DNA of 64,000 nucleotides from Paramoeba atlantica (GCA_977017575.1 CDRNVI010000160.1:34746-98745), one strand, 5' to 3'; shown: positions 40,097 to 63,301, counted from the stretch's first letter. Program-made: numbers and translations. Notes: a model not told the origin generated them from the sequence alone.

Positions 40097-40931
40097 TCAC
40101 CTCGCTGCCTTAATATTTCTTCCTTCCAAAGAAAGATTGTAAAAAGGTTCACCATAAAAATAGAACGAACCAAGAGTTTGAAACATCTCATCAACCATTT
40201 CTCCAGTCTTTGCACTTGTCTCAATGAATGGGATCTTGAACCTCAAAGCCATTTCTTCTCCTTCTTCTTTTGTCACTTGACGTTCTTCTTCTCCAAGATC
40301 AACTTTGTTTCCAATCAAAACGCCAACTGGTACTTCAACATCCTTCACTCTCATTACCTTTTCAATGTAAGAGACAATTTGGTGAAAAGATTCCTTTGAA
40401 GTGATTGAATAAACAAAGAAAAATCCATGGGTATCCAACAAGGGTTGTTCAATGTAGACAATATATTCTTCAAAAGATGGTGAATCTGAAAAGAGAGAAT
40501 AAAAAAGAAAGGAAAGCGATTGGAAGAGAAAGAAAGAAGAGGAGGGAGAGAAGAACCAGAAAGGTCAAAAAGGGTTAGTTGTTCATCGATGTTCAAGATC
40601 ACTTGCTTTCGATATCTGGATGAAAATGAAAATCACAGAAGGAAATAAAGTGAAAAAGAAAAAGGGAAAAACAAACGAATCTTCAATTGTTGGATCATAT
40701 TCCTCAAGAAAAGTATCCTTTTCACAAAATTGTCAAATTGCCAAAAACAAATCGAAACAAAAAAAAAAAAGAAAAGAGAAGAACATGGGCAAATCGAGTA
40801 CACAAAGCAGTTTTGCCAACCCCACCATCACCTTGCATCAACATTCTGAAATGACCAACACGCTCTCGAATTGGCTCTCTCTTTCCTTTTTTTGATTTGT
40901 TCTTTTCTCTTCTCGAAAGAACATTTCCCAT
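40097..40931 (-). CDS. Atypical Ras-family small GTPase, 4 exons, N-terminal MGxxxS plus basic patch, no CAAX
   Basis: GDGGVGKTAL (G1), EEYDPTIEDSYRK (switch I), GNKVDL (G4), ETSAKTG (G5); the spliced G3 region reads FDLSDS. Confidence 0.85.
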
Positions 40932-41196
40932 CTCAATCGCTTTGACAAGTCAAGAGAAGAGAGAGAGGGAAAGGAACAAAATTCGAAAAAAAAATCAAAA
41001 AAGACAGCTCTTTAAAACTCGGTCTGTTTGGATGGGTTTCTCATGAAAAACTATGATTTGTTTTTCTTTCTTTTGAATTCGGGAGAGTGTTCGAAACCAA
41101 ATCTCAAAAAAAAAAGGAATTTTGAATCTTTGTCAAAAGACAAAAGAGAAAAAAGGACAAAAAAAAAACGCTGATAAGATTTTTATTTTTAGATAT

Positions 41197-41853
41197 TTAA
41201 GTGGACCAGCCCTTGCAAACATCATAAGGACCAGCAGGCAAGTCACCGGAGATCTTGGTGTAAGCCGTGTTGATCGCACACATGGAACCAGAATCATCAC
41301 CATCTTCAATGTAGGTGTTGGAGTAAGCCATCTTGGAGGAAACGAACTTGAGGACCTCAGTTCTGTGAAAAGAAAAGCAAAAAATCATGAGTATCATTTT
41401 GAACTTGAAGAAGAAGAAGAGAACAAAAGCTCAAAAGACAAAGAAAAGAAACAAATCAAAAAAAAAAAAAAAAATGAAGGAAAACCTGTCAGCGTTGTTT
41501 CCGTTGTAGTTGCTGTTGGTGTCGCAAGAGTTGTCAGAGGCACCAATGGTGTTCAAGAGACCATATCCAGCCTTAGATTGGAAGTTGATCATACCATTTC
41601 TCCAGTAGTGACCACAAGAGTTGTCAGCGGGAACATAAAATTCAGCAGTCTTGATGTAACAGTTGGGGTAGATAACGAGTTCACCAACTCCAGCGGTGCA
41701 GAAATCGGAGGTTCCTTCATTGGAAGGGGTGGTGGTGGTGGACCAGACACCAGCGATGGAGGAGCATTTGTAGTTGGAGTAGGGGCCTCTGGCTTGCTTT
41801 TCAGCACAGACGGCAAGAACACAAGCGAGGAACAAGATGGCAATCTTCATCAT
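41197..41853 (-). CDS. Small secreted Cys-containing protein of unknown family, 2 exons
   Basis: Signal peptide MMKIAILFLACVLAVCA; ORF 41431..41853 and ORF 41197..41397 are separated by a T-rich GT-AG intron. Confidence 0.7.
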
Positions 41854-42278
41854 GATCGTTTGTGAGTGTGGAAAGTGAAAAAGAAAAAAAAAAGACGGAA
41901 CGCTCTTTTTAGAGCTCTAAATTTTAGCACTTTGATCTAGATTTTTAGCTTTTTTTTTTTTCAGACGAAGACGCAAAAAACTGCGTTCGTTGTTTCTTTT
42001 CGTTGATTTTTGAATTTTCTTTTTTCATTTCTTTTTTTTTTTCTTTTTTTTTTCACCTTTTTTCTTTTGTCTCTTTTTGAGGTGTGGGGTTGCTTTTTTT
42101 GGGGGGTTGTTCTTTTTCAGAAATTTGAAACTGAATCAAAGTTTTTTCTGAAACAAGTTCTTTTCATTTTTCATTTTTTTTTTTTTGGATCTCCATTCAA
42201 CAGTACTTCTTTTTCGAATTTTCTTTTCAAAAGAAAGAAAGAAAGAAGAAGAAAGGGTTTCTCTCGTTTCTCTTCAAA

Positions 42279-43269
42279 ATGGCGGGGGTGTGGGGAACAG
42301 TGAGAGGGGCTCTCTTTGGAAAATCTTTTGTTCGAATTAACAAACGACCAAAAGTTATTATTGCTGGTGATGCGATTGTCGGAAAAGTTGGTCTTTCTTT
42401 TTTTTTGTTTTTGTTTTGTTTTTAGAAAAGGAAGGACAATTTTGTTTTTTCTGGATTCAGACTTTCTCTCTCTCTCTCTCTCTCTCTTTCAATTTTGACA
42501 GACAACGTTACTTTCGGAATGGGGAAACAATCCTGCCTCTCGTCCAAATCGTTGGATTACCAACCGAAAAAGTGGGGCTGGACTCGAGATTATTTGTCAA
42601 GAAGAAGGAAATGCAACAACATATATCGAAGAGATTGCTGAACTTTCTGACTTTACTCTCAGTGGAGCGCATGCTTGTGTTTTACTCTTTTCATTAATCG
42701 ATCGACAAACTCTTCTTACAGTGAAACGAAAGTCAATTCCTTTGATTTTAAGTTCTCGAGGAAAGAATTGTCCAATCATTCTAGTTGGAACAAAACTGGA
42801 TCTTCGAGAAGCAATTAAAATCCCAAAAAACACAACAAAGGGAACAACAACAAAAGGAAACTCATCAAACAAAGAATTACCTTCTCCTCCAAATATTCCT
42901 CCCTGGGATGAAAAAGTAGACGGGGGACTCCCTTCAATCCAAGATCTCCCTTCAGAAGTTCTCATGAAAATTTTTGATTTTCTTGAAGTCGAAAACTTGA
43001 TCTCTTGTTCGAGTGTTTGTAAAGGATGGCATGAAATTTCTAAATATCCTTATATCTGGTCCAACAGACCTGAAAGAGTGGTTCTGACTTCGGAAGGGAA
43101 TGAAGTTAAGAAACAATTCCCTGAAGTTGTAATGTACATTGAAATTGGGCTTGGTCAGATTCGAAATCCAAAAACTTCAAAACAGTTGATTCGAAGAGTG
43201 ATTGAAGAGGCGGCGACAAGTGGTGAAAAATTGGTTACTCCCAAGGTTGAAGAGTATGATGAAAGTTGA
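42279..43269 (+). CDS. Rho-like GTPase fold with an internal F-box; join(42279..42386,42502..43269)
   Basis: KVIIAGDAIVGK|TT P-loop across the intron, ACVLLFSL, PIILVGTKLDLR (Rho-type G4), then DLPSEVLMKIFDFLEVENLISCSSVCKGWHEIS (F-box), then YIEIG...LIRRVIEEA (G5/alpha5-like). Confidence 0.8.
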
Positions 43270-43699
43270 TGTTTTATGGTGATGAGTTTTCATTTTTATT
43301 ATTGAAAAAAAAGAGGGAGAAAAAGATTAAAAAGAGAGAGGAGAGAGAGATGGTGGATCACCAAAAAAAAAGATTTTGTGTGAATAATTTTATCTTTCTC
43401 TCTGCTTGTAAACAAGTGAAGTTGTCAAAAGTGAAGAAGAAAAGAGGTTCATCTCACTTTTAAAAAAATATTGACACAGAGTAACAATTTTTAACATGTT
43501 TATTTTTGACAAATTCCTTTTTTTTCTTTCACACACAAAACAAGAAAGTACCAAAAACAAAAAAACAAACAAAGAGAAATAATTTCACCAAATGAGATAA
43601 ATCAATCCTGACAAGACAGGGAGAAGAGGAGAGAGAGGAAAAAAAAAGACGGACAAACAGAGAGAGAGAGGAGAGAGATCGAGAATAGATCTTTTGTTT

Positions 43700-44575
43700 T
43701 TACGAAAGCTTCTGAGTTGTTGGTCGAGGAGGAGGAGGTTTGTTCGAAGGAGGAAATGCAGAGAGACGATTCTTTGCTGAACTTGAAGGACGAGCAGGAG
43801 AAGGTCGAGCAGGAGCACCACTCCCTCCTCTTGGATTTGGAACTTCAGAAGAAGAAGAAGAAGAAGATGGTTCTGGAGAGGGTGGCTTTCTTCTCTCTGG
43901 GACTGTGGGGCCTCGATCAGCCCATTTTTGGATTGAGCCCCCCGTATTGGAAAAGAAATCATACACCATTGTGTCAACATCAACTTTTTCTGGAGGAGGG
44001 GCGTTTTCTTCTCCTTCTCCTTCTCCTTTTGGTGGGAGGAACCAACTTGCGAGGTATGGTTGCGGATCTCCTTCTGGTTGAGGGTTCTCTTCTCCTTCTC
44101 CTTCTCCTTCTTTCTTCTCTTCCCCTTGAAAGATCGTCGCTCCATAAGCCCCATAATCCGAAACAGTAGAGACCGTGGAATCATAATATGAATCGAGAGT
44201 TTGTTTAAATCCTGGAACAGATTCTTGTCCTTCTTCTGCAGGTTCTTTTCCATAATACCATGTCGACACACTCTCCCCCCAACCTTCTTGGTTTCCCTCT
44301 TCTTGCTTTTCTGGAGGAACATCTCCTTCTTGCTGACTCTGATCAGAGGGGGGGGCAGAAGAAAATTGTGCTTTCACACTATCAATCCCCTGAGCAAAAG
44401 AACCCCAAACATCAGAACCCCCTGCCCCTTCTTCCCCACCACCACCACCGCCACCTTCATTTCCACCTCCACCACCACCAAACCAACCAACCACAGAATC
44501 ATACACGCCCCCTTCTTCTTGTTGTGTTTGTGGTTGCTCCGGCAGCCCCCGATTTGGAGGTGGGGTTCTATCACC

Positions 44576-44631
<56 letters not shown>

Positions 44632-44659
44632 CAGGAGTTGCGGGGGTAGGTCTCCTCAT
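43700..44659 (-). CDS. Hypothetical disordered Ser/Gly/Glu/Pro-rich protein, intronless, 319 aa
   Basis: Long open frame from MRRPTP at 44659 with coding-like composition; no recognised domain. Confidence 0.7.
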
Positions 44660-45086
44660 TTTTTCAACGATGAAAGAAATAAAAGGAAGAAGAAGAGACT
44701 CAAAAAAAAAAAAAAGAAAAACAAAGCAACCCCCAAAACGCAAAAAACGGCCTTTTAAATTGTCCTTTTTATTTTTGTATTGATTTTTTATTTGAATTTT
44801 TTTTTGAGGATTTTTTTTTTTTGGAATCTATTTTTTGGAGTCATCATTTTTTCGTTTTCTATTTCCAAATTCATAATTTGAATTTTTTCATTTCTCATTT
44901 ATCTTCCGTCATTTTTTAAGACCTTTTTAAATCAAATGCGCCCAATTCTTCTAAAATTTTCTTTTCCTCTCCTTTTTCTTTTTTTCCAATCACTTGAATT
45001 TCAGAAAAACTTTTCACAGAGAAAGAGAAAACACAAAAAAGAAAAGAAAAGAAAAGAAAGAAAAAAAAAATTCTCTCAAATTATCA

Positions 45087-48000
45087 TCACAATTCTTGAA
45101 CAAGCCAATTTTGAAACTCCATTAATTGTCCAAGACAAGGATCAGCAGGAACAAGAGGCTCATTTTCTTTCCAATCTCTTTCATTCTCTCTGATTCTCTC
45201 TCTTATTTCGTCCATCGCTTTTATGACCCCTTCTCGAGAATAGGATTTGTTTTTTAAATGCTCCATTATCTGTGAAATATTTTGAATTATTAATTATTAA
45301 TTATTAATTATTATTATTATTTGTTTTTTGTAAGATGTTTTTTGGAAGAGAAAGAGAAAAGAGAAAAAAAATAGAGAAAAAAAAAAGAGAAACAAAAAAA
45401 AAAAAGAAAAAATAAAAGAGAAAAAATAAATAAATCAGAAACTAAATTCCAAAAAAAACAAAAAAAAAAAATTACCAAAGAAACCAAATCAGGAAACAAA
45501 GAATCAGAATAAATAAGAACATCAAGAATCAATCCATCCTTGGAAGTGATATTAACATCCATTATCCCCCACTCGAATCTCTCTTCCATGTTGTGTGTGA
45601 ATGGTGGTGAGTGTCCAAATCTCCAATTCCTTTTTTTTTTTTTTGTTTTGTTTTTGTTTTTTTTTTGTTTTTTTGTTTTTTTGTTTTTTGTTTTTTGTTT
45701 TTGTTTTTGTTTTGTTTTTTGTTTTATTTTTGTTTTTTATTGTTTTATTGTTTTATTGTTTTTTGTTTTTTTTTGGAAGAGGAAAGAGAAGGTTGGGGGA
45801 GAGGAGAGGAGAGAGGAGAAGAAAAAGAAAGTTGAGAAAGAGAAGGAGAAAGGGAAAGGGGATTTTTTTTTTACCAAAGAAATGAAGAGAGAAAGAGAGA
45901 GAGAAAGGAAAAGAGAGAAGAAAGAGAACCATTCTAATAATTTATCATAAATTTGTTTCACTTCACCATTTTTAATAATATCATCTCCAATCTCAATAAA
46001 CTCAACTTCTTTCCTCTCAAGACCATAAGAAGAAAGAAAAGAAGAGACAAGAGAGTCACAGAGAGACTCATGAGAGAGAGAAGGGCAAATATCGTTTAAA
46101 TTTAGAACTCGTGAGACAACACTTTTGATGCCTGGGGAAAGAGAGAAAGAGAGGAAAGGAGAAAGAGAAAAAGAGAAGGACAGAGAAAGAAAAAAAGAAA
46201 GAAAAGTCATTTATTAGTACAAATCCCTTTTTACTTAAAAAAACTAATAAAAGAAGAGAAAGAAAGAAAAAAAGAAAAAAAGAAAAAAAAAAAGAAAAAA
46301 AAGAAAGAAAAAAAGATTAAACCTTTACTTTCCAATTTCTTCTTATTTGGATTCAAATATTTGGCCATATCACTAAAATTCAAATTAAGGAGAATTGTTC
46401 CATGATGTAATCCTCTCTGAGATGCGTATTTAAATGCAGATCCTGATATCTATTTATTTATTATTTTAATCTTTTTTTTATATTCAATTAAAAGACAAAG
46501 AAAGAGGAGAGAAAGAGAGAGAGAAAGAGAGAGAGAAAAGAGAGAGAGAGAAGAAAACCTTGTGATCATTAACATGAAGATCATTCCTCCCAGTAGGAAG
46601 AGCATCAATACCAAAAGGAGTCAAAGCATCACAAAGAATAGCCATATTTCTCTTAACATCATAAAAATTGTTATGAGACATGAAAGAGAAAATGCTGTTT
46701 CCAAAATCTTGGTATACCGCCCCTCCTCCTTTTTTTTGAGAGATTAGAGAGAGAGAGAAGAGAGAGGAGAGAAGAGACAGAGAGGGAGAGAAAGAGAATA
46801 GGGGAAAGGAAAAAGAAGGAAAAAGAAAGAATAATAAAAGAGAGAAGAATTCCAACTTTTGAATGTTTAAATTACAAAAATTCACGAATACAATACAAAA
46901 AAAAGATAGATTAAAAAAAGAAAAAAACAGAAAAAAAAATAGAAAAAAATCAGAAAAAATCATCAACTTCTGGGAATGAAGTCTTTTGTTGGCTTGCTTT
47001 TAGAATTAGTGTACTTTTTCTTATTTCTGGTGTACGTATTGTACGTTACGACTGAGTTGCCTCCTATGAGTAGTGGGTCGCACTCTCCTGGTACCTGTTT
47101 CAATTTTCCTTTTGTTGAAAATGACTTCCTGCGCATTCTCCCGTTGTAACGCTTCTGCCGACATTGATTGTAATGTCTTCACTAGCCCCCTCACCAAGAA
47201 AGGATGTTTCTACTATCCAAGGTAATAAACTCTCTTCTGTTTCACCTATTACAAGACAGACATCGGATGGTAAGTCAGGACTTTCGAGTACCAATGCCCC
47301 TCCAACTAAACCTCCACCGTTCCAAAAATCCACCTCTGCTGGAAAGCAAGGATTGAGACATCGTATAACCAGCTCATCCGAGCAACTTGAACGAGGGAGC
47401 CCTTTGTGAAGGAACCAGACTTTGCCAAGTTTCTTGAGAGATATAAATATGACCCAGTGATTGAGCAAGCTGCCCTCTGGTTTGTCAAGGAGGGTTTAAT
47501 GGAATGGTTGGATTTGCCACCGAACTCAAAAATGTATTCACAACCGAAGCCAGGGAGCGACAAAATGTGAGTCTAAAAAAATCAGAAGTTCTCTCAAATT
47601 GTGGCATTCTTGTTGTTATAACATAAAAAGTGAGTTCAATTGAGCGATATGATATCTTGATGGAATAGGGTACTTTTTGAGTGGTTTTGTGAGATTGTCT
47701 TTGTCTCGCTCACTCTAAAACTCTAAAAAAAATAAAATAAAAATAAACATTATCTGTTCTTCTATCTCCTGAATAAAACACTTTTGAAACGGGTTTCTGA
47801 TGTGGTTCATTTCTTAACAAATAAAAAACAAACAATCTCACAAAAAATAGACAGAAAAAGTAATTAAAAAACATTCAAAAAATAAAAAAAAAAATAAAAA
47901 AATAAAAAAAAAACCAGAAAATCTTCGAACAAGATGAACATTATCTTCCTCCATTTTTTGGACAAAACACTCTTTAAACGGATTCTGATGTCTCCCAATA

Positions 48001-48155
48001 ATAACAGAAGGTTCATTTCTCCACAAATACAAGAGAGGTTCTTCTTTCTTTTCTTTGATTGAAGAATCCCAGAGCCATTCTTCGAATGCGATGTTGATAA
48101 ATGGGTTTGTTGTCTTTGTTGTTATGATTCTTGGTTGGTTTATGAATCGAAACAT
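45087..48155 (-). CDS. lplA: Lipoate-protein ligase A (LplA/LIPT1 family), multi-exon
   Basis: NPFINIAFEEWL, LWRNEPSVIIGRHQNP, RRFSG|GGAVYQD, GRNDL, KISGSAF, HHGTILL, GIKSVVSRV and WRFGHSPPF motifs across exons. Confidence 0.92.
46976..47570 (+). other. Candidate nested antisense gene or inserted coding-like island in lplA intron 1 (46729-47914)
   Basis: High-complexity sequence unlike neighbouring T/TC introns. ATG 46976 gives MKSFVGLLLELVYFFLFLVYVLYVTT (hydrophobic); a GT..AG at 47091-47185 joins it in frame to ORF 47164..47409; a second open frame 47391-47570 reads EPFVKEPDFAKFLERYKYDPVIEQAALWFVKEGLMEWL. Confidence 0.4.
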
Positions 48156-48647
48156 TCTATTTTTTAAAAAATGAGGAGAAAAAAAGAGAGACCAATTGAT
48201 TGAATCAGTTAATTCAAAAGAAAAGAAAGAAAGAAAAAAAAAATCAACAAACTTTTTCAGATTTCTTCGAAACAAAAAAAAAAGAAAAAGAAGGAACAAA
48301 AAAAAAATTGGAGAAAATCAATTGAGGAGCCCACTCCCGTTCTCCCATACAAAATTTAATGTAAAAAACCATACTGATAAATTTTTAAACTTTTCCATCA
48401 CAAACCCTTTTTTTTATTTATTTCGAGGTCGTTTGTCTTTGTGAAAATAACTCTTGAATTTTGATTTTTAGAGAACTTCGAAGTTCTCCACGCCTCGAGC
48501 AAAAAGACCAAAAGCAATCTCGTGTGTTTTTCCTTTCGTCTGTCGCATCTTTTGCAAAAAGAGAACACCACCGTCCGCCTCAACTGAAACAGCAGTGGTT
48601 CTTACAACTTCATTCTCTTACAGAAAACAACAGAATCGGAATAGAAA

Positions 48648-49001
48648 ATGACAGACGTTTTGTTGGACGATGTCCTCGCGGCTGATAAGACCTGGGACTT
48701 CAAGTTCTATTTCGAGAAAGACGGCGAAAGAAATCAGATTGATCTCTTTGTTCCTCTCGGTCAAGAGGACCTTTTCCTCCAGATTTTTTCTGGAGAGATT
48801 ACTCGGGTGGAGAACATGTCGAGATTGTTGATCAACAGTAGCTTGGAAGATTTTCAGAGAAGATTGGCATCATTGCGCTTGCGTATTTTAGCAGGACCTG
48901 TCTCTTTTTCGATTGGCAGCAGAACAGTTGGCGTCTTTTATGCTGGCCGTACTCGTGTGCACTCAGTGGAGAGCGCAGATTGCTCCAAAGGACAAAAATG
49001 A
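48648..49001 (+). CDS. Hypothetical 117-aa protein
   Basis: ATG-initiated ORF with globular-protein-like composition in an otherwise T/A-run intergenic region; no motif recognised. Confidence 0.55.
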   Translation: MTDVLLDDVLAADKTWDFKFYFEKDGERNQIDLFVPLGQEDLFLQIFSGEITRVENMSRLLINSSLEDFQRRLASLRLRILAGPVSFSIGSRTVGVFYAGRTRVHSVESADCSKGQK

Positions 49002-49609
49002 GAATAAAAATCATTTAAAAATCATTGATCAGAAGAAACTCAATTATTTGATATTTTGAAGAAAAGGTTCCGGATTCATTTTTCTTGTGAAAAAAAATCT
49101 TAAACAAAAATCTCAAACAAAAATCTCAAAGAATGAAACTCATTTCAAAGAATTTTTGCGATTTCATTGGGAACCAATTTTGTGTAAATTTTGAATTTTG
49201 GCGATTGGAGAAAGAGAGAAAAAAATGAGAAAAAAAAATTCACAAAAATCGTCGAAAAAAAAGAAATTCTTCTTTTTTTCCCTCAAAGTAGTGACCTTTT
49301 TGTAGTTATCAAATGAGTATTTTAAATAAAGTAAAAATATAAAAAAGGAAGATACTACCTTTCTGTTTCTTTTCTCGTTTCGTGTGTCGCGGCGAAAAGA
49401 AAGAGAACAAGAGGTTTGTTTGTTTTTTTTTGTTTTGTGAATTTATTTTTTTGTTATTCTTTTATTTGTTTTTTATTTTTATTTTTAAAACAATTTTTTG
49501 TTTTTGATATTTTTTTTGAAAAAGTTTGGTTTTTTTTTTTCAAACAATGTTTGTTGTGTTTTTCTTTTTCTTTTTCATTTTTTTAATCTTTGTTTCTTTT
49601 CTCAGAAAG

Positions 49610-52600: not shown

Positions 52601-55038
52601 TCCTGAGTAATATTAAAGGAAAAGATCTGATTGGAACTGCTCTTACTCTTCCAATGGAATCTCATTATGATGTCATTTATACTCTTCCAATGATGACAGG
52701 TTTTGTCTAATTTTTATTTTTAGTCTTTTTTTGTCAATTTTGTTTTGTTTCTCTTGAAAAAATGGAATCTAATTATTGATCTTTTCTCTCTCTCTCTTTC
52801 TTTTTTGTTCTTTCAGTCCTTATGGACAAAGGAACGGGAATCGTCACAAGTGTACCAAGCGACTCTCCTGCAGACTACCGCACAATCCTCGACCTCAAGG
52901 AAAAACCAGATCTCAGAAAAAAATTCGATATCCTTGATGAGTGGATTCTCCCATACGATTCTGTCAAAATTATTGATATTGAGGGAGATACAGAATGTGC
53001 CAAGACTGTTTGCGAAGAACTCAAGGTCACTTCTCAAAACGATCCGAAACTTGAGGATGCGAAGACAATTGCTTATCGTCTTGGATTTAATAAGGGTGTG
53101 ATGATTGTGGGATCTCAAAAGGGAAAACCAGTTACTGTCGCAAAACCCCTTCTCACACAAGAACTGATTGAACAAGGAAATGCATTTAAATATGCGGAAC
53201 CTTCTGATGAAGTGATCTCTCGTTCTGGGAGTGTTTGTGTCGTTGCACTTTCTAATCAATGGTATCTTCCTTATGGAGAGGGAGAGTGGCTCAAGAAAGC
53301 AAAGGAAGCTGTTGATCGAATGAAGATGTATGGAGATTCTCGAGCAACTCGAAAATCCTTTGAGGAAGCTCTTGATTGGCTCCACGAGTGGGCTTTCTCT
53401 CGAACCTATGGGCTTGGAACAAAAGTCCCTTGGGATGAGAATTATCTGATTGAATCTCTTTCTGATTCCACCATTTATATGGCGTATTATACCATCGCAC
53501 ATCTTCTGCAAGGAGGAAATCTCTCTGGGTCACAGCTCGGTCCTCTGGGAATTAAACATGAGCAAATGATCCCCGAAGTTTGGGATTATGTTTTTGGAAT
53601 GTCACCGGATGTTCCTGAAAAATCCGATATCGCCCCTGAACATCTTAAGACAATGAGGAGAGAATATGAATATTGGTATCCTTATGATGTTCGTGTGAGT
53701 GGAAAAGATCTTGTGAAAAATCATCTGACTTTTGCGGTGTATAATCACGTTGCTCTCTTTGAAGATGAGAAGAGATGGCCAAAAGGTGTCAGAACAAATG
53801 GATTTCTGCTCCTGAATGGAAAGAAAATGTCAAAAGGAGCGGGAAATTTTCTGACTCTGAGGGAAAGTATTCAAAAATATTCTTCTGATGCGATGAGAAT
53901 GGCTCTGGCGGAAGCAGGGGATAATCTTGATAATTCTAATTTTACTCATGGGTCTGCAAATGCCGCTATTCTTAAGCTTTTTAAATTTGTTGATTTTGTT
54001 AAGGAGATGGTGGAGAAGAAGAAGAGTCATCGAACTGGTGAATTTAATTTTAGAGATCGAGTTTTTGCTGCTCAGGTTTTTATTTTTGTTCTTATTCTTT
54101 GTTTTTCTTTTGTTTTTTTTTTTCTCTCTCTCTTCTTTTATTGAAATGAAAAGATAATGATATTATTTATTGATTTAAATTTTTCTTTTTTTTTTTTATA
54201 GATTGATCGAGCCATCGTGAGAGCAACCGCAGCGTACGAAGAAATGAATTTCAGAGAAGCTCTTATCGCTGGTGTCTTTGACCCAAAAGCAGATATTGAT
54301 TCTCATATTCACTCCACTTCAACTCTTGGAGGACCACACGCAGACCTGATTTCCCGATATATCCAAGTCCAACTTCTTCTTCTTGATCCAATTTGCCCAC
54401 ATACAATGCAATATATTTGGAAAGATGTTCTCGGAAATAAGGAACAGCTGCTTTGTGATGTTCCTTGGCCTGTTCCTTTCCAGGATGTGGATATTAAGAT
54501 TACAATTCAACAAGATAAGTGGGTGGGTCAAGCTCTGTCGGCTATGCGAGCAAAGATTGACTACGAAGTCAAACAGGCATCAAAGAAGGGAAGTAATGGA
54601 GATAAATTTGAGTGTTCTCGGGTTGTTGTTGTTGTTGGAGAACACCCTGAGTTTATGGCTGAGACAGAAGTTTTTCTGAGAAAGGTATTTAATGAAGAGA
54701 CAAACTCTCTCCCACCACTGAAGGAATTTGCTGGGCAACTGAAGAATCTGAACAGTCTGAAAGGAAATAAGAAGGCAATGCAGCTTTGTATGAAACTTGT
54801 GAAAGAGACAGTGGATAAGGTTGCTGTCGAAGGGGCTCCTGCTCTCCAACTTGGTCTCTCTTTTGATGAAGTTGAGACCATTCAGATGAATTGTGATTAT
54901 CTGAAAGCTGCTCTGGGAGTGAAAGAAGTTTCTGTGGCGAGAGAAGCTGACGCTGGTGCTGATCTTCCTCCAAAGAGAGTTCTTTCTTGTCCTGGAAAAC
55001 CAGCTACTGTTTCTCTTTTTATTCAAAAGATTGAGTGA
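49610..55038 (+). CDS. LARS1: Cytosolic leucyl-tRNA synthetase, multi-exon
   Basis: [14 protein letters not shown] (HIGH), [33 protein letters not shown] (CP1 editing domain), [30 protein letters not shown] (KMSKS). Confidence 0.96.
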
Positions 55039-55447
55039 AGAGAGAGAGAAATTTTCTCTTTTTGAGATTTTTGGGATTTGTTTTTTTGATGATGAATGAT
55101 GTGATGGGTTTGTGGAGGATGGATTTTGGTGTGTCGAGAGGTGTTGTGGTGTTGGTGAGTGTTTGGAATTTCAAAAGTTGTGTTGGGAAGGAGGGTCGAA
55201 AAGAAAATTTTCAGTAAACTGACATTTTTTCTCAACTTTTTCATCCCTTCTTTGTCTTATTATTGAATAATTATCAATCTCTCAAATGAATTGAGCGAGA
55301 GATTTCTCACTCCAAGAGCTTGAGTCAAGAAAACTGTGATTGTTTGAAATTTCGTGGAAAGAGAGTTTTCTCCGAATTCTTTGTTCTCTCTCTCTTTCTC
55401 TTTCTCTCTCTTTCTCTCTCTCTTTGACACGAAGGAAAAGGAGGGTG

Positions 55448-57535
55448 ATGAATTGGTTGTCGGTGTGGTGTTGGATTCAATTTGGAACAGGGGTCTATCT
55501 CTTTCCAAGTCGAATCCACTTTTACAATTCCATGGGGTTTGAATCCTCTCATTTGAAAAGTGAAGAGAAAGGAAAGATTCCTCTTCTTTTGAGAAAGAAA
55601 AGGGGTTTGTCAACACAAGGTTATCCTTTCTTGGGAGTGGTCAAAGTTCCCCACTTTTCTTCTCTTGTTTTAGTTCTCTTGTATCTTCTTTATTTGATCA
55701 ATCTCGCTTACATTGGTTGGTTTGGATCTTCATTCGTGGGGAATATCACTGCAATGATTCTCTATGTTTGTGTTGTTTCATCTCTTTGGGCGGAAGAGAG
55801 TCTCTCTTACCATAGAAATATCCTTCCATGTGTTGTTCATCTCTATGCTGCTCTCATCCAACTCAGTATCAGCGGTGGTGGTGGTGGTGGGTTTGAAAGA
55901 GATGAAGAAGATTTATTCGAACCGGTGTTGTTACAATGTATTCAACTTCATGTTTCTTCGATTTACTATGCTGGTGGGATGCAAAGAATCAGTGCTTCTT
56001 TTATTCAGAATATGTTTTGGGGTTTTTTTATTCCTCTTTCTGTGACTTGGAATGGGCTTTGGAGTAAACCTCTTCTTGCTCATGGTCGTTGGGGAAATCG
56101 AATTGGAAAAAAGGGAAAAGGGAAAGGAGAAGAGAAAGGGGAACAAGAAGAAAAAGAAAAAAAGAAATCAAAGAAGAACCAAACAACTTTAATTGATTTC
56201 GAGAAGTTGAATCCTTTGTGCAACTGGGAAAACATGCCTCCCCTTTTATCTTTCTTGACTTTTCCTATCTTCTTTCCTCTCACTCTCCTCTCTTATCTTC
56301 CTTTCTTTAGTTCTCTCGGCTTATCTTTCCGTCGATACTTGAGCAAAAAATCGATTGAGTTTCATTACTTTATGGTCAGAAAACCGTTCTTTATCTTGTT
56401 TTGTGGGACCTTTGCTCTCTTTTTCGAAATCATTCTCTTTCCCCTCTTTCTTCTCTACCATTGCCCTTACCTCCGAGAAACCTTCTCGAGCTACATCACA
56501 GAGCTCAATAGAGAATATCTCCTTCTTTTCATCTTTATCTCCAGCTGTCTTCTTCTTAATATGCATGTTATGATTTGTTTTCTCCAAGGAATCGATTATT
56601 TGAGTATGTGGGGTCCAGTTCTTTTCTGTTTTATTTTTCTTCCCTCTCTTCCTCCCTCTCTACTCTCATTCACAGCAGCAGGAGAAGACTTATCTCCTTC
56701 TTATTCTCCTCCTCCCTTCTCCTTCTCTTCATTTTATTCTTCTCTCCATGGCGCCTTCTTGGCCTTCCAAATCATCTTTGCGTTGGTATCTGCCGAGAAC
56801 TATAATATCAATATTCCACCATTCATGTCATGCCCAATGTTCTCAGTGGTAAAGCCAATGTTCGGACGTGATCACAGAGTTTATGGTATCAGAGAACCAG
56901 GTGTTCCTCGCTCTAGTCGGTGGGAATACTTTGAATGGAGTTATCCTCAATTTAAGGAGAGCACAGGGATCGGACTTTCTCCTCCTCAGTTCAATAATCT
57001 TCCTTTTTGGGGAATCCAATTTGGTGTGGTTGATAAATACTCTGAGGAACCTGGGTTGAAGAGCTTGAATGATTCAGAATTTTTTTCATATTCTGAGGAG
57101 AATTTTCCATCGGTTCAGTCTCGACCAATTCCTGAATCTTTGAAATGGATTCAACCAGTTTTGAATGTCTATCTTTCTTGTGTTCACAGATTTCGTACTT
57201 CCCTTTTGTCGATGCGTGAATATGGAGTTTGGCATTTTGCTGCTTCTCGAAACATCAAAGGGTCATTACAAGAGTGTGCATGGCATCAAATTTGTTTGGA
57301 AGAAGGCTCAATGTATTATGTGATTTGTAATCGAGATGGGTTAATGGAGAGGTTGGAAGAGTATTTAAAAGAACCACCACATGAATTTCTCTTTTCTGTT
57401 CTTCGTTTATTGAATAATAATAATCGAAAAGCGCAATGGAATTCTTCTTTGATGGATGATCTTTGTGCTCGTCATGCCAAATTTACTCGGGCAATTCTTG
57501 AAATGGTTGGGAGTGATACAACAAGTTCCTGCTAA
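55448..57535 (+). CDS. Multi-pass membrane protein, weakly HTTM-like, intronless, 695 aa
   Basis: Several hydrophobic segments; LLQCIQLHVSSIYYAGG and LFFEIILFPL...MHVMICFLQGIDY resemble the HTTM Q..Y..G / E / H..I...G pattern. The family call is tentative. Confidence 0.55.
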   Translation: MNWLSVWCWIQFGTGVYLFPSRIHFYNSMGFESSHLKSEEKGKIPLLLRKKRGLSTQGYPFLGVVKVPHFSSLVLVLLYLLYLINLAYIGWFGSSFVGNITAMILYVCVVSSLWAEESLSYHRNILPCVVHLYAALIQLSISGGGGGGFERDEEDLFEPVLLQCIQLHVSSIYYAGGMQRISASFIQNMFWGFFIPLSVTWNGLWSKPLLAHGRWGNRIGKKGKGKGEEKGEQEEKEKKKSKKNQTTLIDFEKLNPLCNWENMPPLLSFLTFPIFFPLTLLSYLPFFSSLGLSFRRYLSKKSIEFHYFMVRKPFFILFCGTFALFFEIILFPLFLLYHCPYLRETFSSYITELNREYLLLFIFISSCLLLNMHVMICFLQGIDYLSMWGPVLFCFIFLPSLPPSLLSFTAAGEDLSPSYSPPPFSFSSFYSSLHGAFLAFQIIFALVSAENYNINIPPFMSCPMFSVVKPMFGRDHRVYGIREPGVPRSSRWEYFEWSYPQFKESTGIGLSPPQFNNLPFWGIQFGVVDKYSEEPGLKSLNDSEFFSYSEENFPSVQSRPIPESLKWIQPVLNVYLSCVHRFRTSLLSMREYGVWHFAASRNIKGSLQECAWHQICLEEGSMYYVICNRDGLMERLEEYLKEPPHEFLFSVLRLLNNNNRKAQWNSSLMDDLCARHAKFTRAILEMVGSDTTSSC

Positions 57536-57788
57536 AAGAAACAAACCTAACAATTTGATTGAAAAATAAGAGAAATAATTTGAAAAAGAAACCAAAAATA
57601 ATTGAGAAGAAAGAAGAGAGTTTATTCAGAAAAAAAAGAAGCAAAAAGAAGATTAAGTTCGTCATAGGGAGATTCAATTTCAACCAATCATCTTTCAGAA
57701 AATAAATTCTAAAGATTCATTCACTCAAATCCACCCATTTCACTCACCCAATCATCATCACCATCTTTTCATTGAATCACCATCTCAT

Positions 57789-58772
57789 TTACCACAGATC
57801 TTCATCGTCAGAGAAAAAAGTCCCACCAAAACCGACATCATCAGAATCTGTGTCATTAGGATCGATGAGGTTCTCATCTTGAAGAACATCTTCTTCAATT
57901 TCTTTCTTCTCTTTCAGGGAAGCAGAAGCAGCAGCCAACGCTTTTGCAAGAGCTTCAGGGTCATCAAGAAGAGCCTTGATCTCCTCAGTTCCCTCGAAAG
58001 TGCAAGAAGTGGCCAAAGATAAATGGACAATCAACTTGTAAGCGTTGTTGAGGGAATGAGGAACAGAAGCGAGGGTGGGATAGCCAACTCGTAAGGAAAT
58101 GGAAGCGACTTTTTTGACAGCTTTTTGGAAATCAGAGATCATGTCTTCCTCAGTCAAATCAAGGACCTTTGCATCAAAGAAAGCACCATCGTCAAAAACA
58201 TACTTGACAGAAAGCCCATACTTGAAAGGACGAAGATTCAACTTGGTGAGCAGAACAGCCTGGGAAGGAGTCACTTTCTCTCCCTCACGAATCAAATTGA
58301 CATTGGTCTTAATTTCAATCTGACCTCTTGCAATCATTGTTGGGATTGGAGGATCCAAAGCTTGAAAGAAAGAGGTCTGACCAGGATCAAGACCGGTGGG
58401 ACCAGCGTTTAAAACGACATCACAAGGAGCAACAGCACCAACACGAGCAGGTGCACCAATTTTGTTCTCCAAAATCTTCCTTCTGATAGAGGTGATATCG
58501 CCATTGGTGAAAACAAAACCCAAATTGCCATACAACTTGGGGAGAAGTTGTTGGTACGGAGGGAACTCCTTTTCGTTTTCGCGAAGGATTTTTCGAATGA
58601 CAGTGTTCTTTCCCATCAAAATAGTGGCTTCATTTCGGAGGGAAGAACGGATCCGTTGGAAGTGGTTGGAACCAACGTTATCAGCACCGATAAGGAGAAG
58701 TTTGTCGTGCTCTCTCAGCAAGCCGAGGAGTTGAGAGCGGAAAGCGAGTTTCTTTTCAGAGAGTTGCTTCAT
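57789..58772 (-). CDS. RPLP0: 60S acidic ribosomal protein P0 (uL10), intronless, divergent C-terminus
   Basis: ADNVGSNHFQRIRSSLR, LMGKNTVIRK, GNLGFVFT, GAPARVGAVAP, TGLDPGQTSFFQAL, GYPTLASVPHS. Confidence 0.93.
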   Translation of the reverse strand: MKQLSEKKLAFRSQLLGLLREHDKLLLIGADNVGSNHFQRIRSSLRNEATILMGKNTVIRKILRENEKEFPPYQQLLPKLYGNLGFVFTNGDITSIRRKILENKIGAPARVGAVAPCDVVLNAGPTGLDPGQTSFFQALDPPIPTMIARGQIEIKTNVNLIREGEKVTPSQAVLLTKLNLRPFKYGLSVKYVFDDGAFFDAKVLDLTEEDMISDFQKAVKKVASISLRVGYPTLASVPHSLNNAYKLIVHLSLATSCTFEGTEEIKALLDDPEALAKALAAASASLKEKKEIEEDVLQDENLIDPNDTDSDDVGFGGTFFSDDEDLW

Positions 58773-58922
58773 TTTTGGTTCTTTTGTTAAGCCCCAAGGG
58801 TTACCCAAGGATATTTAAGCTGTTCAAAAGGAAAATGAATTCTGAAGAAGAGAGAGGAAAAAACATCAGAGCAGAGTTCAATGAAAAAGGGAAATGACAA
58901 AAGGATCAGGAAAAATAATAGA

Positions 58923-58932
58923 ATGACGTCAT
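58923..58932. promoter_or_regulatory. Palindromic ATGACGTCAT (CRE-like) in the divergent RPLP0/ankyrin promoter
   Basis: Perfect 10-bp palindrome; related TGACG cores occur in other divergent promoters of the window. Confidence 0.35.
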
Positions 58933-59199
58933 CCTAATTCGTTTGAATTTGATTTTTATTACTCCCTCCCCAATCCAGCCATTTTTTATTACAGTTGGGG
59001 TGCTTTTAAAAGTCGTGATTTGGTTTTTCTTTTTGGCACCATTTTTTCCTCTTTTTCATTCTTTTTTTTGTTTGGAGTTGTTCAAATTTCGTTTTGGTTT
59101 TTTTTGGGGGGGTCTTCAAAATTTCTGTTGATTGTTGTTGTTTGGCTCACACCCAAATTTGTTTTTGAAGGGAGAAGAGAAGAGAGAAGAGAAGGGGAA

Positions 59200-60084
59200 A
59201 TGGCCGAAGATGAAGGGGAAAACTCAATAGGATGTCGATTATATGTTGCTGCTCTGCAAAATGACCATGAACAAATCAGACATCTTATCGAAGAAGGTTT
59301 CTCTTTTTTGCTCTCTCTCCCTCTCTCTCCCATTTCCTTCTTCCTTCTCCACTTTAAAGGGTCAATCAGCTGCTGATTGACACTCTGAGTGATGGGTTCT
59401 TTTTTTCTCTTTCTCTATTGAGAAAATGATGGAGATATGAAACACAAGAGATGACCTAAAGATCAAAGTATTTCTCCTCTTTTTTGAGAGTCTGGTCCCA
59501 CACAGAGACGAAAAAGAAAATTATTAAAAAAGAAAGAAAATTGGGTTCTCAAAGATTCGTTCTTCAGCACTCTCCTAAGGCTTGGGAGGGGGATCAGAGT
59601 TGAATTGGATGATGTTGTGTGAAAAATGCTTTTCAAAATAATGGAAGATATTGTCGATCCTTTTTCAAAAATACCTCCTCTTTTTCCGCAATCCAAATTG
59701 AATGAGTTCCCTGATGCCCTTTCACTCGTTTGTTTCAAGAAATAAACAAATTCAAAAACAGGAGCAGATGTAAATTGGAGACATTATTCTTCCGTTGATA
59801 CACCACTCCACGGAGCTGCAGCCTTTGGTTGTTTTGGAGCTGTTAAACTCCTCCTTGATTTGGTTTCTCTTTCTTTTTTCTCTTTTCTGTTTTCTCTCTT
59901 TTCTCTCTTTTCATTTCAAGTGACCCAATTTTTTTGTTCATTCAAAAAACAGGGAGCAGACCCAACCATTCGGAACAGTAGAAATGAAACCCCTTTGGAT
60001 CGAGTTCGGAACAATGAACAACTTTCCGAGTATTTAAAAGCATGGAATACTTGCCAAGTGAAGCCAGCGAAAAAAGATAAATAG
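59200..60084 (+). CDS. Small ankyrin-repeat protein, copy 1 (3 exons)
   Basis: RLYVAALQND...GADVNW...DTPLHGAAAFGCFGAVKLLLDLGADPTIRNSRNETPLD; exons splice in frame; ends CQVKPAKKDK. Confidence 0.88.
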
Positions 60085-60116
60085 GATATGATTGGTCAGG
60101 GAAATGTCATTTGGCT

Positions 60117-60240
60117 ATCAAACTTCACATGAAATGTAATTACAAAATGTATTTTTCTCATATTTTTAGTGATTTGATCTCACAAGCGAATTCATTCAGT
60201 GCAACAATCTTCATGTTAATTTACAAGTTGAAGGGTTTTC
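60117..60240 (+). repeat. Left arm of a ~125-bp imperfect inverted repeat (partner 61160-61306)
   Basis: First 40 bp (atcaaacttcacatgaaatgtaattacaaaatgtattttt) are the exact reverse complement of 61267-61306; similarity continues with indels. Confidence 0.9.
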
Positions 60241-60411
60241 CATAATAAACTTGAGATAAACTTGAAACTCACTTTTTCAACATCCCCTTCTCTTTTTGTT
60301 CCAAGCCCTTCAAGAAAGAATAAATTTTACACAAACAGAAAAAGCAAAATTTTGTTTCTTTTTGAGTGCTTTTGAAGGGAGAGAAAAGAGAGAAGAGAGA
60401 AGAGAGAGGAA

Positions 60412-61086
60412 ATGGCCGAACGTGAAGGATTCCACTCAATTGGAAGTCGATTATATGATGCTGCTCTGCAAAATGAAGTTGAAGAAATCAGACGTCTTAT
60501 TCAAGAAGGTTTGTTTCTCTCTTCTTTTTCTCTCTTCCATTTTCCGCTTTCTCGATTGAAAAAACGAGCAACAATCGTCTTGGATAAGATCAAAGTATTT
60601 CATTCAAAATATTGGGTGATTATTATTGTGTGATCCTTTTTCAAAACATGTAGAGTAGTAAAGGAGTTTAACACAAAAAATACCTCCTCTTTCCGCAACC
60701 CAAATTGAATGAGTTTCTCTATGCCCTTTCACTTGTCCTTGTTTGTCTCAAAGAAAATAAACAAATTCAAAAACAGAAGGAGTAAATGTAAATTGGAGAC
60801 ATTTTGAATCAGATGATACACCACTCCACGGAGCTGCAGCCTTTCGTCAATTTGAAGCTGTTAAACTCCTCCTTGACTTGGTTTCTCTTTCTTTTCTCTC
60901 TTTTCTCTCTTTTCCTTTCAAGTGACCCAATTTTTTTGTTCATTCAAAAAACAGGGAGCAGACCCAACCATTCTGAACAGTAGAAATGAAACCCCTTTGG
61001 ATCGAGTTCGGAACAATGAACAACTTTCCGAGTATTTAAAAGCATGGAATACTTGCCAAGTGAAGCCAGCAAAAACAGAAAAATGA
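60412..61086 (+). CDS. Small ankyrin-repeat protein, copy 2 (recent tandem paralog of 59200..60084)
   Basis: Same three-exon structure, near-identical last exon, alignable intron and 5' UTR sequence; ends CQVKPAKTEK. Confidence 0.88.
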
Positions 61087-61159
61087 GATGAATGTTTTGT
61101 GTATAATGATTGATTGGATCTTCACATATATATATATTTTTATAAAAATATATATTCGA

Positions 61160-61306
61160 GAAAAACCCTTCAAAAAGTGAACTTGGTTAAATAACATGAA
61201 AGATTTGTTTGTTGTTGCAATTGAATGAATTCGCTTCTGAGATCTAAATCACTAAAAATATGATAAAAAAATACATTTTGTAATTACATTTCATGTGAAG
61301 TTTGAT
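61160..61306 (-). repeat. Right arm of the inverted repeat (partner 60117-60240)
   Basis: Reverse complement aligns to 60117-60240 across tatttttagtgattt, gcgaattcattca, catgtta and gaagggtttt. Confidence 0.9.
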
Positions 61307-61377
61307 GTGTCTTGAAGAAAAGAAAAGAAAAAGAGAGGAAAACAGAAGAAGAAAAGGACAGAATGTCTCTCGATTTT

Positions 61378-62030
61378 TTAAAGTTCATCAAGAGAATTCA
61401 TCGCAGAAGAAGATCGAAAAAGGAGATAAAAAATGGTAATCAAACACAACAAAATAATTGCGTTTGTCAAACAAAACATTAATTTTGGGGGAGAAGAAGA
61501 AGAAGAAGAAACAGAAGAAGAAGAGGTTGAAGAGAGAGACGAGGAGGGAGAGGTATTTTCTTCTGAATGAGATTGTCTTTCTCGTACTTTCTCTTCTTTC
61601 TTTTCTCTCTCTTCTTCTTCCTCTTCTTTCTCTTCTTTCTCTTCCTCTTCTTCTTCCTCTTCTTTCTCTTCTTCTTTTCCCTTTTTCTCCTTACTTTTTC
61701 TCTCTTTTTCCAATCTCCTCTTTTCTAAGTCCCTCAAAAGGTCACGATTGGGAGAAGCAGAAGAAGAGGAAGATGAAGAAGAAGGATTTGAAGAAGAAGA
61801 GTTTTGTTCATCTGCATCTCCAGACATTTGGAGAGGATCATCCTATTTGAAAAAAGGAGGGGTTTGGAAAGGAAGAAAAGAAAGAAAAAAAAAATCGAAA
61901 AAAAAAAAACAACCACAAGAAAAGAGAAAAAGAAAACCTGAACAAAATCAGCATGGACATTGCCAACAACCTCAGAAGGCCAATAAACAGGTTCTACAGG
62001 TTCTCTTAATCGATAGCAAATGCATTGACT
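61378..62030 (-). CDS. Hypothetical tail-anchored protein with Ser-rich and charged segments (5' exons uncertain)
   Basis: ORF 61378..61827 ends in a hydrophobic helix (LMFCLTNAIILLCLITIFYLLF); an upstream open exon near 61945-62030 (CICYRLREPVEPVYWPSEVVGNVHADFVQ) ends at a GT donor. Confidence 0.5.
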
Positions 62031-62451
62031 ATTTCAAGAAAGAATGAGAGAGAGAGAGAGAAAAGGAGAAAAGAAAAAAAAAAGAGAAAAACAAAACTCC
62101 ATCCCCAGAAACAGAAAAAAGTGCAAAAAAGAAAATAAAAGAAACCGTTTTTTTCCAAATAAAGACCTAAACTGTTTTATTTCTTTCGATTTTTGGAGTT
62201 TTTTGGGAAATTTCTTTGAAAACAGAGACGGTTTGTGAAAAGAAAAGGAGTCCCAATTCTCTGCCTTTTGGAGAATCTGAGTCTCGTTCAAGAAGATTTT
62301 GTCTCAAAATCATGTCTTGTTGAAATGTCATTTGCCACTCAAAATTATTAGATTTCAGAATGAAGAAAAAGGGAGGAGATTTTAATCACCAAAAACAAAC
62401 GATTGAATGATTGTCAAGTTCTTCTTTTGAATCTATTTTTTTTTCAGAGTT

Positions 62452-63301
62452 TCATGATTCAAGTTTTTTGGCTGCTTTGACATTAAGAGCCCAATTCCCA
62501 GGTAATTTCTTGACCACAGCTTCAAAAATCAAATCCAAATTTGTATTTGAAAGAGCTGATGTCTCATAATAAGGAATATGTTGACGCTCCATACAAAATT
62601 CAGAAACCAAACTGAAATCCACAGCCCTTTGACATTCACCACTTTCAATTTTATCCAATTTGGAACCAACAACAACCACATAAGGTAAGGATGTCTCACC
62701 TTCAAAAGTGTCAATAAAAGTTTGGTAGATGTCTTTTAAAGAGTTGAAAGAGTCTTGGTTTGTGAGATCGAAAACTAATATTCCTGCAGAAGCTCCTCTG
62801 TAGAATGATCTGCTGAGTGCTTGAAATCTCTCATTTCCTGCAGTATCCCAAATCTATTATTTTTTATTCTTATTATTAGATTGTTGGACAAGGATATGGG
62901 AGAAGTCGATTTGGATATATTCTTTCATATCCATTTGATTCTTCTTCTTATCTTAATAGTTGAAATTTTCTTGAAACTCTCAAAATAATCTCAAAATAAT
63001 CTTCACTCTTTAAAAAAAACAAAAATAAATCTCCAAACCTGAAGACGATAAGCACCATCATCCAAAAACAAATCTTTTATTGCAAAATCAGCACCAATTG
63101 TCGCTCGATACTGTTCACTAAAAGTGTGGGAAACATACTGATTCATAATTGATGTTTTTCCAACTCTAAAAAAAAAAAATGGAAAGTGAAAAAGTTGAAT
63201 CAAAAAGAAAGGGAAGTTCTCAAGAGAGAAAGAAAAGGAAAAACTCACTTTTCGGAGCCAAGTATAACAATTTTTAAGTGGGACTCTTCTGACTTCTCCA
63301 T
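62452..63301 (-). CDS. Rab7-like small GTPase, 3 exons, without C-terminal cysteines
   Basis: LKIVILGSEK|VGKTSIMNQYV, YRATIGADF, IWDTAGNERFQAL, FYRGA, GSKLD, YYETSAL; ends NWALNVKAAKKLES. Confidence 0.88.

Follow-up and report, generated by a model that had tools for sequence, protein, structure and literature searches.

Here we describe a 64,000-nucleotide stretch of the genome of Paramoeba atlantica (CDRNVI010000160.1, 34746-98745), in which four small genes end on a common five-residue C-terminal motif, referred to below as the tag. The whole stretch, at its full length, is called the window, and positions in it are counted from its first letter. P. atlantica is an amoebozoan that hosts the kinetoplastid endosymbiont Perkinsela. 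The window consists of AT-rich, intron-rich eukaryotic DNA, from which the four carrier genes were rebuilt by hand; in the resulting models every intron is GT-AG and every frame is intact. The genes encode a Ras-like GTPase, a Rab7-like GTPase and two small ankyrin-repeat proteins, AnkA1 and AnkA2. A preliminary description of this DNA, made from the sequence alone, had placed tails of the form [IV]K[AP]A[KR] at four gene ends, and both direct reading and the spliced models located all four there, with coordinates that agree within a codon. The carrier genes and their tags are as follows.

40097-40931, minus strand: Ras-like GTPase gene, 211 residues; spliced GT-AG model with an open frame
40931-40785, 40717-40677, 40615-40557 and 40485-40097, minus strand: exons of the Ras-like gene in the spliced model
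40100-40114, minus strand: Ras-like tag IKAAR, with N before it and the stop (40097-40099) directly after it; the end reads LEGRNIKAAR
62452-63301, minus strand: Rab7-like GTPase gene, 193 residues; spliced model
63301-63249, 63165-63039 and 62853-62452, minus strand: exons of the Rab7-like gene in the spliced model
62467-62481, minus strand: Rab7-like tag VKAAK, with N before it and KLES plus the stop (62452-62454) after it
59200-60084, plus strand: AnkA1, a small ankyrin-repeat protein of 109 residues; exons 59200-59296, 59762-59862 and 59953-60084
60058-60072, plus strand: AnkA1 tag VKPAK, with CQ before it and KDK plus the stop (60082-60084) after it
60412-61086, plus strand: AnkA2, tandem paralogue of AnkA1, 110 residues; exons 60412-60508, 60777-60880 and 60955-61086
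61060-61074, plus strand: AnkA2 tag VKPAK, with CQ before it and TEK plus the stop (61084-61086) after it

The Rab7-like protein thus reads ...NWALNVKAAKKLES (NVKAAKKLES) at its C-terminal end. AnkA1 has ankyrin-repeat character, and its 43-residue last exon, taken by itself, does not have the length needed for a Pfam match. The last exons of AnkA1 and AnkA2 are approximately 95% identical in DNA, which identifies the two genes as recent tandem duplicates. Consequently, the window holds three independent cases of the tag and not four: the proposal that unrelated families had converged on one tail stands for three families, with the two ankyrin genes counted once. The end of AnkA2 reads TEK-stop in the window and TEKMR-stop in the ENA assembly (locus L001), a difference of one base in a homopolymer. 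The motif had also been described as directly following the last helix of the folded domain. This was not the case, as a linker of 3-8 residues separates the two in the carriers.

Enrichment of the motif beside stop codons

A six-frame scan of all 64 kilobases (kb) of the window returned four matches to [IV]K[AP]A[KR]. These were exactly the four gene ends, and each match sits 0-4 codons upstream of the stop of a spliceable gene. As had been claimed, the window's housekeeping genes, which encode ribosomal protein P0, a class I tRNA synthetase, a DegT aminotransferase, a cytidylyltransferase and a zf-MYND protein, do not carry the motif.

Motif counts were extended to neighbouring and paralogous loci of the same genome (L001-L011; ENA ERZ24900291), which supply approximately 118 kb beyond the window and brought the non-redundant total to 163 kb, and later to 182 kb. 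In the 163 kb, the relaxed motif [ILVM]K[APS]A[KR] had 25 matches, of which 23 lay no more than 5 codons from a stop. As a permutation control, these five residue classes were counted in their 119 alternative orders, which averaged 2.6 matches, with 0.73 beside a stop; the few orderings that scored high were equivalent patterns matching the same tails. The two matches far from a stop were VMKSAKL, inside a long open frame, and GKNIKSARKK, a Ras-like remnant 9 codons from a stop. A near-stop match, VVKSAKFC, was set aside as chance, as it lies off-frame inside a 912-codon open frame. Looser motifs, with other residues at positions 1, 3, 4 or 5, produced noise only. Among the first four contig extensions, only the one past the window's end yielded a new carrier (family X, described below), and the last 19 kb of contig extension held no further carriers.

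One explanation to be weighed against these counts is that such tails arise by chance in Lys/Ala-rich C-termini, or that gene ends have been set wrongly and the transcripts splice onward. The motif was defined after the tails had been seen, a point in favour of chance, but 23 near-stop matches against an average of 0.73 for the other orderings argue strongly the other way, as the preliminary description had anticipated in calling the tails hard to attribute to chance. The question of mis-set ends turns on the individual genes.

The carrier families and their gene ends

The Ras-like protein of the window matches the Pfam Ras family (PF00071, E=4.5e-23), has Rap2A, M-Ras and R-Ras2 as its best solved-structure matches, and contains GDGGVGKT, GNKVD and ETSAK, all of which assign it to the Ras family. 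Its switch II is degenerate (40557-40485), reading DSPSFEEY instead of DTAGQEEY with the Gly and the Gln lost, whereas the DxxGQ motif is present in its paralogues. At least 13 paralogues make up the family, most of them arranged in tandem on ctg3841l and ctg2844l; one head-to-tail array of at least 11 copies runs across two overlapping contigs (L003:1-8500 and L004:8000-13500). In 8 aligned paralogues, which are 61-92% identical, the sequence N-I-K-[A/S]-A-[K/R], followed by 0-1 residue and the stop, is invariant, and it is present in every other copy found. The conservation of this tail equals that of NKxD and ETSAK. The linker that joins the last helix to the motif occurs in five lengths, with indels and many substitutions. 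Synonymous variation is low throughout the family, and the tail does not fall below other conserved stretches in this respect, so a signal at the nucleotide level was ruled out. Many of the array copies have a Cys two or three residues upstream of the NIK of the tail. A RasGEF gene with RasGEF_N and RasGEF domains (L011:2087-4753) lies on ctg3889l, approximately 15 kb from a tagged Ras-like copy, and is itself without the tag.

For the Ras-like gene, a mis-set end would find support in an AG/GT donor (AG|GTGA) that overlaps the stop of the window copy, and the preliminary description had pointed to this donor as a possible sign that the tail is spliced differently. The donor occurs in the window copy only. 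Those array paralogues that were read codon by codon run ...AAG AGA (once ATA) and then TGA, without a GT at that place, and the L002 copy ends AGG AAA TAA. Because the donor is missing from these paralogues, it is unlikely to be used in the window copy. The motif is kept in every Ras-like paralogue, and the position of the stop is kept within one codon in those for which codons and flanks were read.

At the other end of the protein, the window copy, which has no CaaX box, starts with MGNVLS followed by a polybasic stretch, that is, with an N-myristoylation-type start. Every Ras-like first exon found begins with Met-Gly and continues with a basic stretch; only the window and L002 copies have the canonical Ser at position 6. 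These starts suggest that the Ras-like proteins probably carry an N-terminal anchor.

The Rab7-like protein also belongs to the Pfam Ras family (E=1e-24). Rab7 is its best solved-structure match (E=1.3e-19), and Rab7 proteins are its top database matches, at no more than 47% identity. It is without a hypervariable region and without C-terminal cysteines, ending 15 residues past the last helix; 109 of the 119 relatives retrieved have a terminal Cys. Its nucleotide-binding motifs are atypical (62853-62452), with DTAGNE, in which Asn stands for the catalytic Gln, SKLD in place of NKxD, and ETSAL in place of SAK. Judged by their degenerate catalytic motifs, the two GTPases of the window may be slow or non-hydrolysing switches.

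A downstream prenylation exon was considered for both GTPase genes and rejected. Behind the Ras-like gene there was none, and behind the Rab7-like gene we found only a seven-codon open frame ending CPC-stop (approximately 61950-61975, minus strand), 480 bases downstream of the Rab7-like stop. Such a frame could be taken as a sign that the Rab7-like end is mis-set, but it runs antisense to an open frame of the plus strand and lacks a phase-matched donor upstream. Its presence behind the gene is probably due to chance.

Two further carriers were found outside the window. AnkB, another small ankyrin protein, is encoded on ctg3889l and ends TLKPAKSP; a word search with the AnkA last exon returned no candidate relatives. 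Family X lies just past the right end of the window (L009:2300-7600, plus strand; ctg3211l, approximately 20.0-25.3 kb) and consists of seven tandem copies of a gene for an orphan protein of approximately 130-150 residues with an acidic start, MEEGEEETSPNIGD. Family X has no Pfam match and only five matches among 1.84 billion representatives; an Atlas fold search gave nothing above noise, and the AlphaFold model was unusable (predicted local distance difference test, pLDDT, of 35). An intron of variable length (70-110 bases) splits its main exon from a last exon of 12-13 codons, which differs among the copies by in-frame indels and ends [M/T/I]VKPAKR. Only family X has a micro-exon of its own for the tag; in the Ras-like and Rab7-like genes, the tag lies inside the last domain exon.

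Family X also links the gene models to RNA. Copy 1 of the family (L009:2298-2780) has a colinear counterpart in the transcript-derived protein P0170 (MMETSP0151 transcriptome; EukProt EP00008_Paramoeba_atlantica_P014994), and the two agree residue for residue save for a few one-base assembly indels. In P0170, the main exon and the 13-codon last exon are spliced at precisely the predicted junction and the C-terminus reads VKPAKR, which provides RNA-level support for the family X tail. A second transcript-derived relative, P0171, is 35% identical and still ends SIKPAKRN. Several family X copies contain one-base frame breaks. Since single-base indels of the assembly break the frame where the transcript does not, apparent pseudogenes there may reflect homopolymer errors. 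Given the permutation control, the conserved position of the Ras-like stop and the transcript confirming the family X tail, chance and mis-set ends are largely refuted, and we regard them as extremely improbable.

The codons used for the tag vary between the families: the aliphatic residue is encoded by ATT, GTC, GTG or CTT, and Ala by GCA, GCG or GCC. The 3' flanks of the carrier families have nothing in common. A shared mobile 3' DNA cassette was therefore ruled out, and these two observations, together with synonymous variation in the tail that is no lower than elsewhere, indicate that the constraint acts on the peptide and not on a DNA element. The tag is encoded at the protein level, is held by purifying selection inside families, and is found on at least four unrelated folds. 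The view of the tail as a lineage-specific feature of expanded, tandemly duplicated families of unrelated folds was supported, and AnkB and family X extend it.

Outside this lineage, the same place in the protein is occupied differently. A Cys is present within the last five residues of 139 of all 167 proteins retrieved, and the motif occurs nowhere in 160 Ras or Rab homologues outside the loci of the Ras-like family (0/160). The nearest relatives of this family in other organisms end in CaaX, and the closest named one, from the amoeba Cochliopodium minus, ends CFLF. By sequence comparison, the predicted Ras-like tag thus stands where related amoebae have CaaX. Two other sequences bear on the spread of the tag: P0132 comes from a different organism, with a guanine-cytosine (GC) content of 25%, and does not carry it; in L012:2676-3200, from an environmental eukaryote with 25% GC, the last exon of a Ras gene ends SLRVAK-stop without CaaX, in a pattern that differs from the tag. 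A full-text literature search for six tail strings returned only unrelated uses, such as the D domain of insulin-like growth factor 1 (IGF-1), and the Paramoeba genome paper does not mention such a tail (PMC5601477).

As for the surroundings of the carrier genes, a two-exon gene at 41199-41853 (minus strand) encodes a small protein that is rich in cysteine and looks secreted, its start, MMKIAILFLACVLAVCA, resembling a signal peptide; it does not carry the tag. For the related P. pemaquidensis, the host's nuclear genome has been reported to be intron-rich and without spliced-leader trans-splicing (PMC5601477), which is consistent with this window.

Known short motifs and a candidate docking tag

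We tested fifteen short-motif patterns on 14 distinct tails: CaaX, the Rab cysteine box, the peroxisomal targeting signal PTS1, KDEL, di-lysine, three PDZ classes, the consensus for the small ubiquitin-like modifier (SUMO), the classical nuclear localization signal (NLS), VxPx, three C-degron types and EEVD. None of the 15 fits all 14 tails, and most fit none. The CaaX box (Cys at -4, two aliphatic residues and one more) and the Rab CC/CXC/CCX(X) box each matched 0/14 tails, which agrees with the preliminary description of the GTPase tag as occupying the usual CAAX/CC site without a prenylation signal; in some Ras-like paralogues, a Cys lies outside the CaaX box, 8-9 residues from the end. KDEL was likewise found in 0/14. 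PTS1 ([SAGCN][RKH][LIVMAF]) fitted a single tail of the 14, that of a Ras-like paralogue ending AKI, and the tails as a set are not PTS1 signals. Di-lysine, K(X)KXX, fitted two of the 14 and is likewise not the common signal, the carrier sequences having no membrane spans. The classical monopartite NLS, K-[KR]-x-[KR], appeared in 1/14, too few for it to account for the tails. The VxPx ciliary motif was present in five of the 14 (AnkA and family X) and failed in AnkB and in all GTPase tails, so that it too does not describe the set.

Our preferred reading, which we hold with moderate confidence, is that the tails are copies of one lineage-specific C-terminal docking or address tag of Paramoeba. 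Such a tag would consist of an aliphatic residue, Lys, Pro/Ala/Ser, Ala and Lys/Arg, placed 0-4 residues from the end and joined by a short flexible linker to the small folded module before it. One common putative partner would bind the exposed tail and bring Ras-like, Rab-like, ankyrin and family X modules to one place or complex, and for the cysteine-less GTPases this docking would replace prenyl-dependent placement. The fixed order of the residues, the invariant non-charged positions, the flexible linker and a spacing from the carboxyl end that varies between 0 and 4 residues point to a short linear motif bound by a common partner, and so does the presence of the same tail on soluble binder modules and on GTPases that probably have another anchor. 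The tail comes in two forms. AnkA1, AnkA2, AnkB and family X have the P form, [I/L/V]-K-P-A-[K/R]; the Ras-like and Rab7-like proteins have Ala or Ser for the Pro and place an Asn in front of the aliphatic residue. On this reading, KPAK (the P form) and the KAAK, KSAK and KAAR of the GTPases (the A/S form) would be variants of one tag.

A membrane-binding role offers a different account of the GTPase tails, in which a short polybasic patch has replaced their lost prenyl anchor. Basic C-termini take the place of CaaX in the Rit, Rin and RGK GTPases. The tail is located where relatives have CaaX or CC and carries a net charge of +2 to +4, as such a patch would. However, charge alone explains neither the fixed order nor the invariance of Asn, Ile and Ala, the tail is only 5-8 residues long as a patch, and the same tail occurs on soluble ankyrin and family X proteins. 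The Ras-like family, moreover, already has its Met-Gly and basic start in every paralogue, which also weakens the earlier idea of the tail as a simple stand-in for a membrane anchor. We consider a polybasic patch very improbable; both the N-terminal starts and the invariant N, I and A, which a purely electrostatic anchor would not need, favour docking over anchoring.

The position of the Lys raises the possibility that the tail is a lysine-modification acceptor, receiving a ubiquitin-like conjugate, a methyl group or an acyl group from an enzyme that reads aliphatic-K-small-A-basic as the SUMO E2 enzyme reads aliphatic-K-x-E. The SUMO consensus opens with the pair that the exposed tails have in 14/14 cases, an aliphatic residue immediately followed by the invariant Lys; the absence of a fixed distance to the end also fits an enzyme that reads local sequence. 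The acidic residue of the SUMO consensus, by contrast, is present in 0/14 tails, all of which have a basic residue instead, and sites of this kind usually occur internally as well, whereas the occurrences of the tag are nearly all terminal. We know of no lysine-modification consensus that matches the tag. Lysine modification is thus possible but, on balance, unlikely.

Alternatively, the tail could govern turnover, as a C-terminal degron that is read by a ubiquitin-ligase adaptor and determines how long these fast-evolving switches and binders persist. A degron has a precedent in animals, where a C-terminal ligase box is common to ankyrin proteins (ASB) and small GTPases (Rab40), and the tail is terminal and basic, with Arg last or at -3, as in Arg-type C-degrons, in 7/14 tails (not in the ankyrin and Rab7-like tails, nor in some Ras-like ones). 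Known C-degrons need an exact distance to the end, however, and here 0-4 residues follow the motif; this variable distance to the carboxyl end is unlike signals read from the free end in general. The carriers also do not resemble proteins with a ligase box. With E up to 1, Pfam found only Ras or Ank families in them and no SOCS, BC-box or F-box signal, and their 5-24 residues after the last domain helix are too few for a SOCS box. This weakens the SOCS-box analogy drawn in the preliminary description, as the tail measures 5-13 residues and the box 40. We judge a degron to be improbable.

Several points weigh against the docking tag that we prefer. That the same partner reads both the A/S and the P forms is an assumption, the partner protein is putative, and a docking or address role is what the sequences suggest. 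The transcript support concerns family X; the 3' ends in the window are gene models, with paralogue conservation in addition for the Ras-like gene. The array copies are closely related to one another, and counts per copy consequently exaggerate independence: five families count as independent (Ras-like, Rab7-like, AnkA, AnkB and family X), a figure that treats AnkA and AnkB as separate although they share the ankyrin fold. Finally, the additional loci were reached in part through Ras-like paralogues, and the frequency of the tag can therefore not be estimated from them. Taken as a whole, the earlier interpretation is partly supported.

A more far-reaching version, which we find doubtful, is that the tag would be a new kind of proteome-wide sorting or conjugation signal, specific to Paramoebidae, with a reach like that of PTS1 or CaaX and a receptor or enzyme of its own. 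It might direct host switch and binder proteins to the Perkinsela interface, and the lineage would have exchanged the prenyl anchors of its Ras and Rab proteins for the tag.

Significance and relation to known systems

CaaX, PTS1 and KDEL each opened a field, since a single receptor or enzyme accounts in each case for what becomes of many proteins. The label described here is five residues long and recurs on small, mutually unrelated modules in an amoeba with a eukaryotic endosymbiont. It has displaced a near-universal prenylation box on the whole Ras-like family, and it matches none of the known labels tested. As the tag is short, portable and terminal, its function is directly testable with reporter fusions and peptide pull-downs, and finding its reader would reveal a lineage-specific wiring of signalling modules.

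Among known systems, the closest in placement are the CaaX and Rab CC/CXC boxes, which likewise end Ras and Rab GTPases with a very short signal preceded by a variable linker, in exactly the place that the tag takes. Unlike these boxes, the tag lacks cysteines where they are required, is followed by a variable number of residues, and is found on ankyrin and orphan proteins as well. The SOCS box of ASB ankyrin proteins and Rab40 resembles it in another respect, as one C-terminal module common to ankyrin-repeat proteins and small GTPases that links them to a common machine, but the SOCS box is a folded unit of approximately 40 residues with a BC-box and a Cul-box, whereas the tagged tail is short and gives no Pfam signal. 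With the SUMO consensus, the tag shares an aliphatic residue directly before an essential Lys in a flexible segment, and it differs in that the acidic residue at +2 is replaced by Ala and then a basic residue. PTS1, KDEL and di-lysine signals, finally, are family-independent address labels of a few residues at the protein end, each read by a dedicated receptor, and this is the likeness that a docking or address tag would have to them; they differ in their fixed distance from the free carboxylate, and the carriers of the tag have neither signal peptides nor membrane spans.

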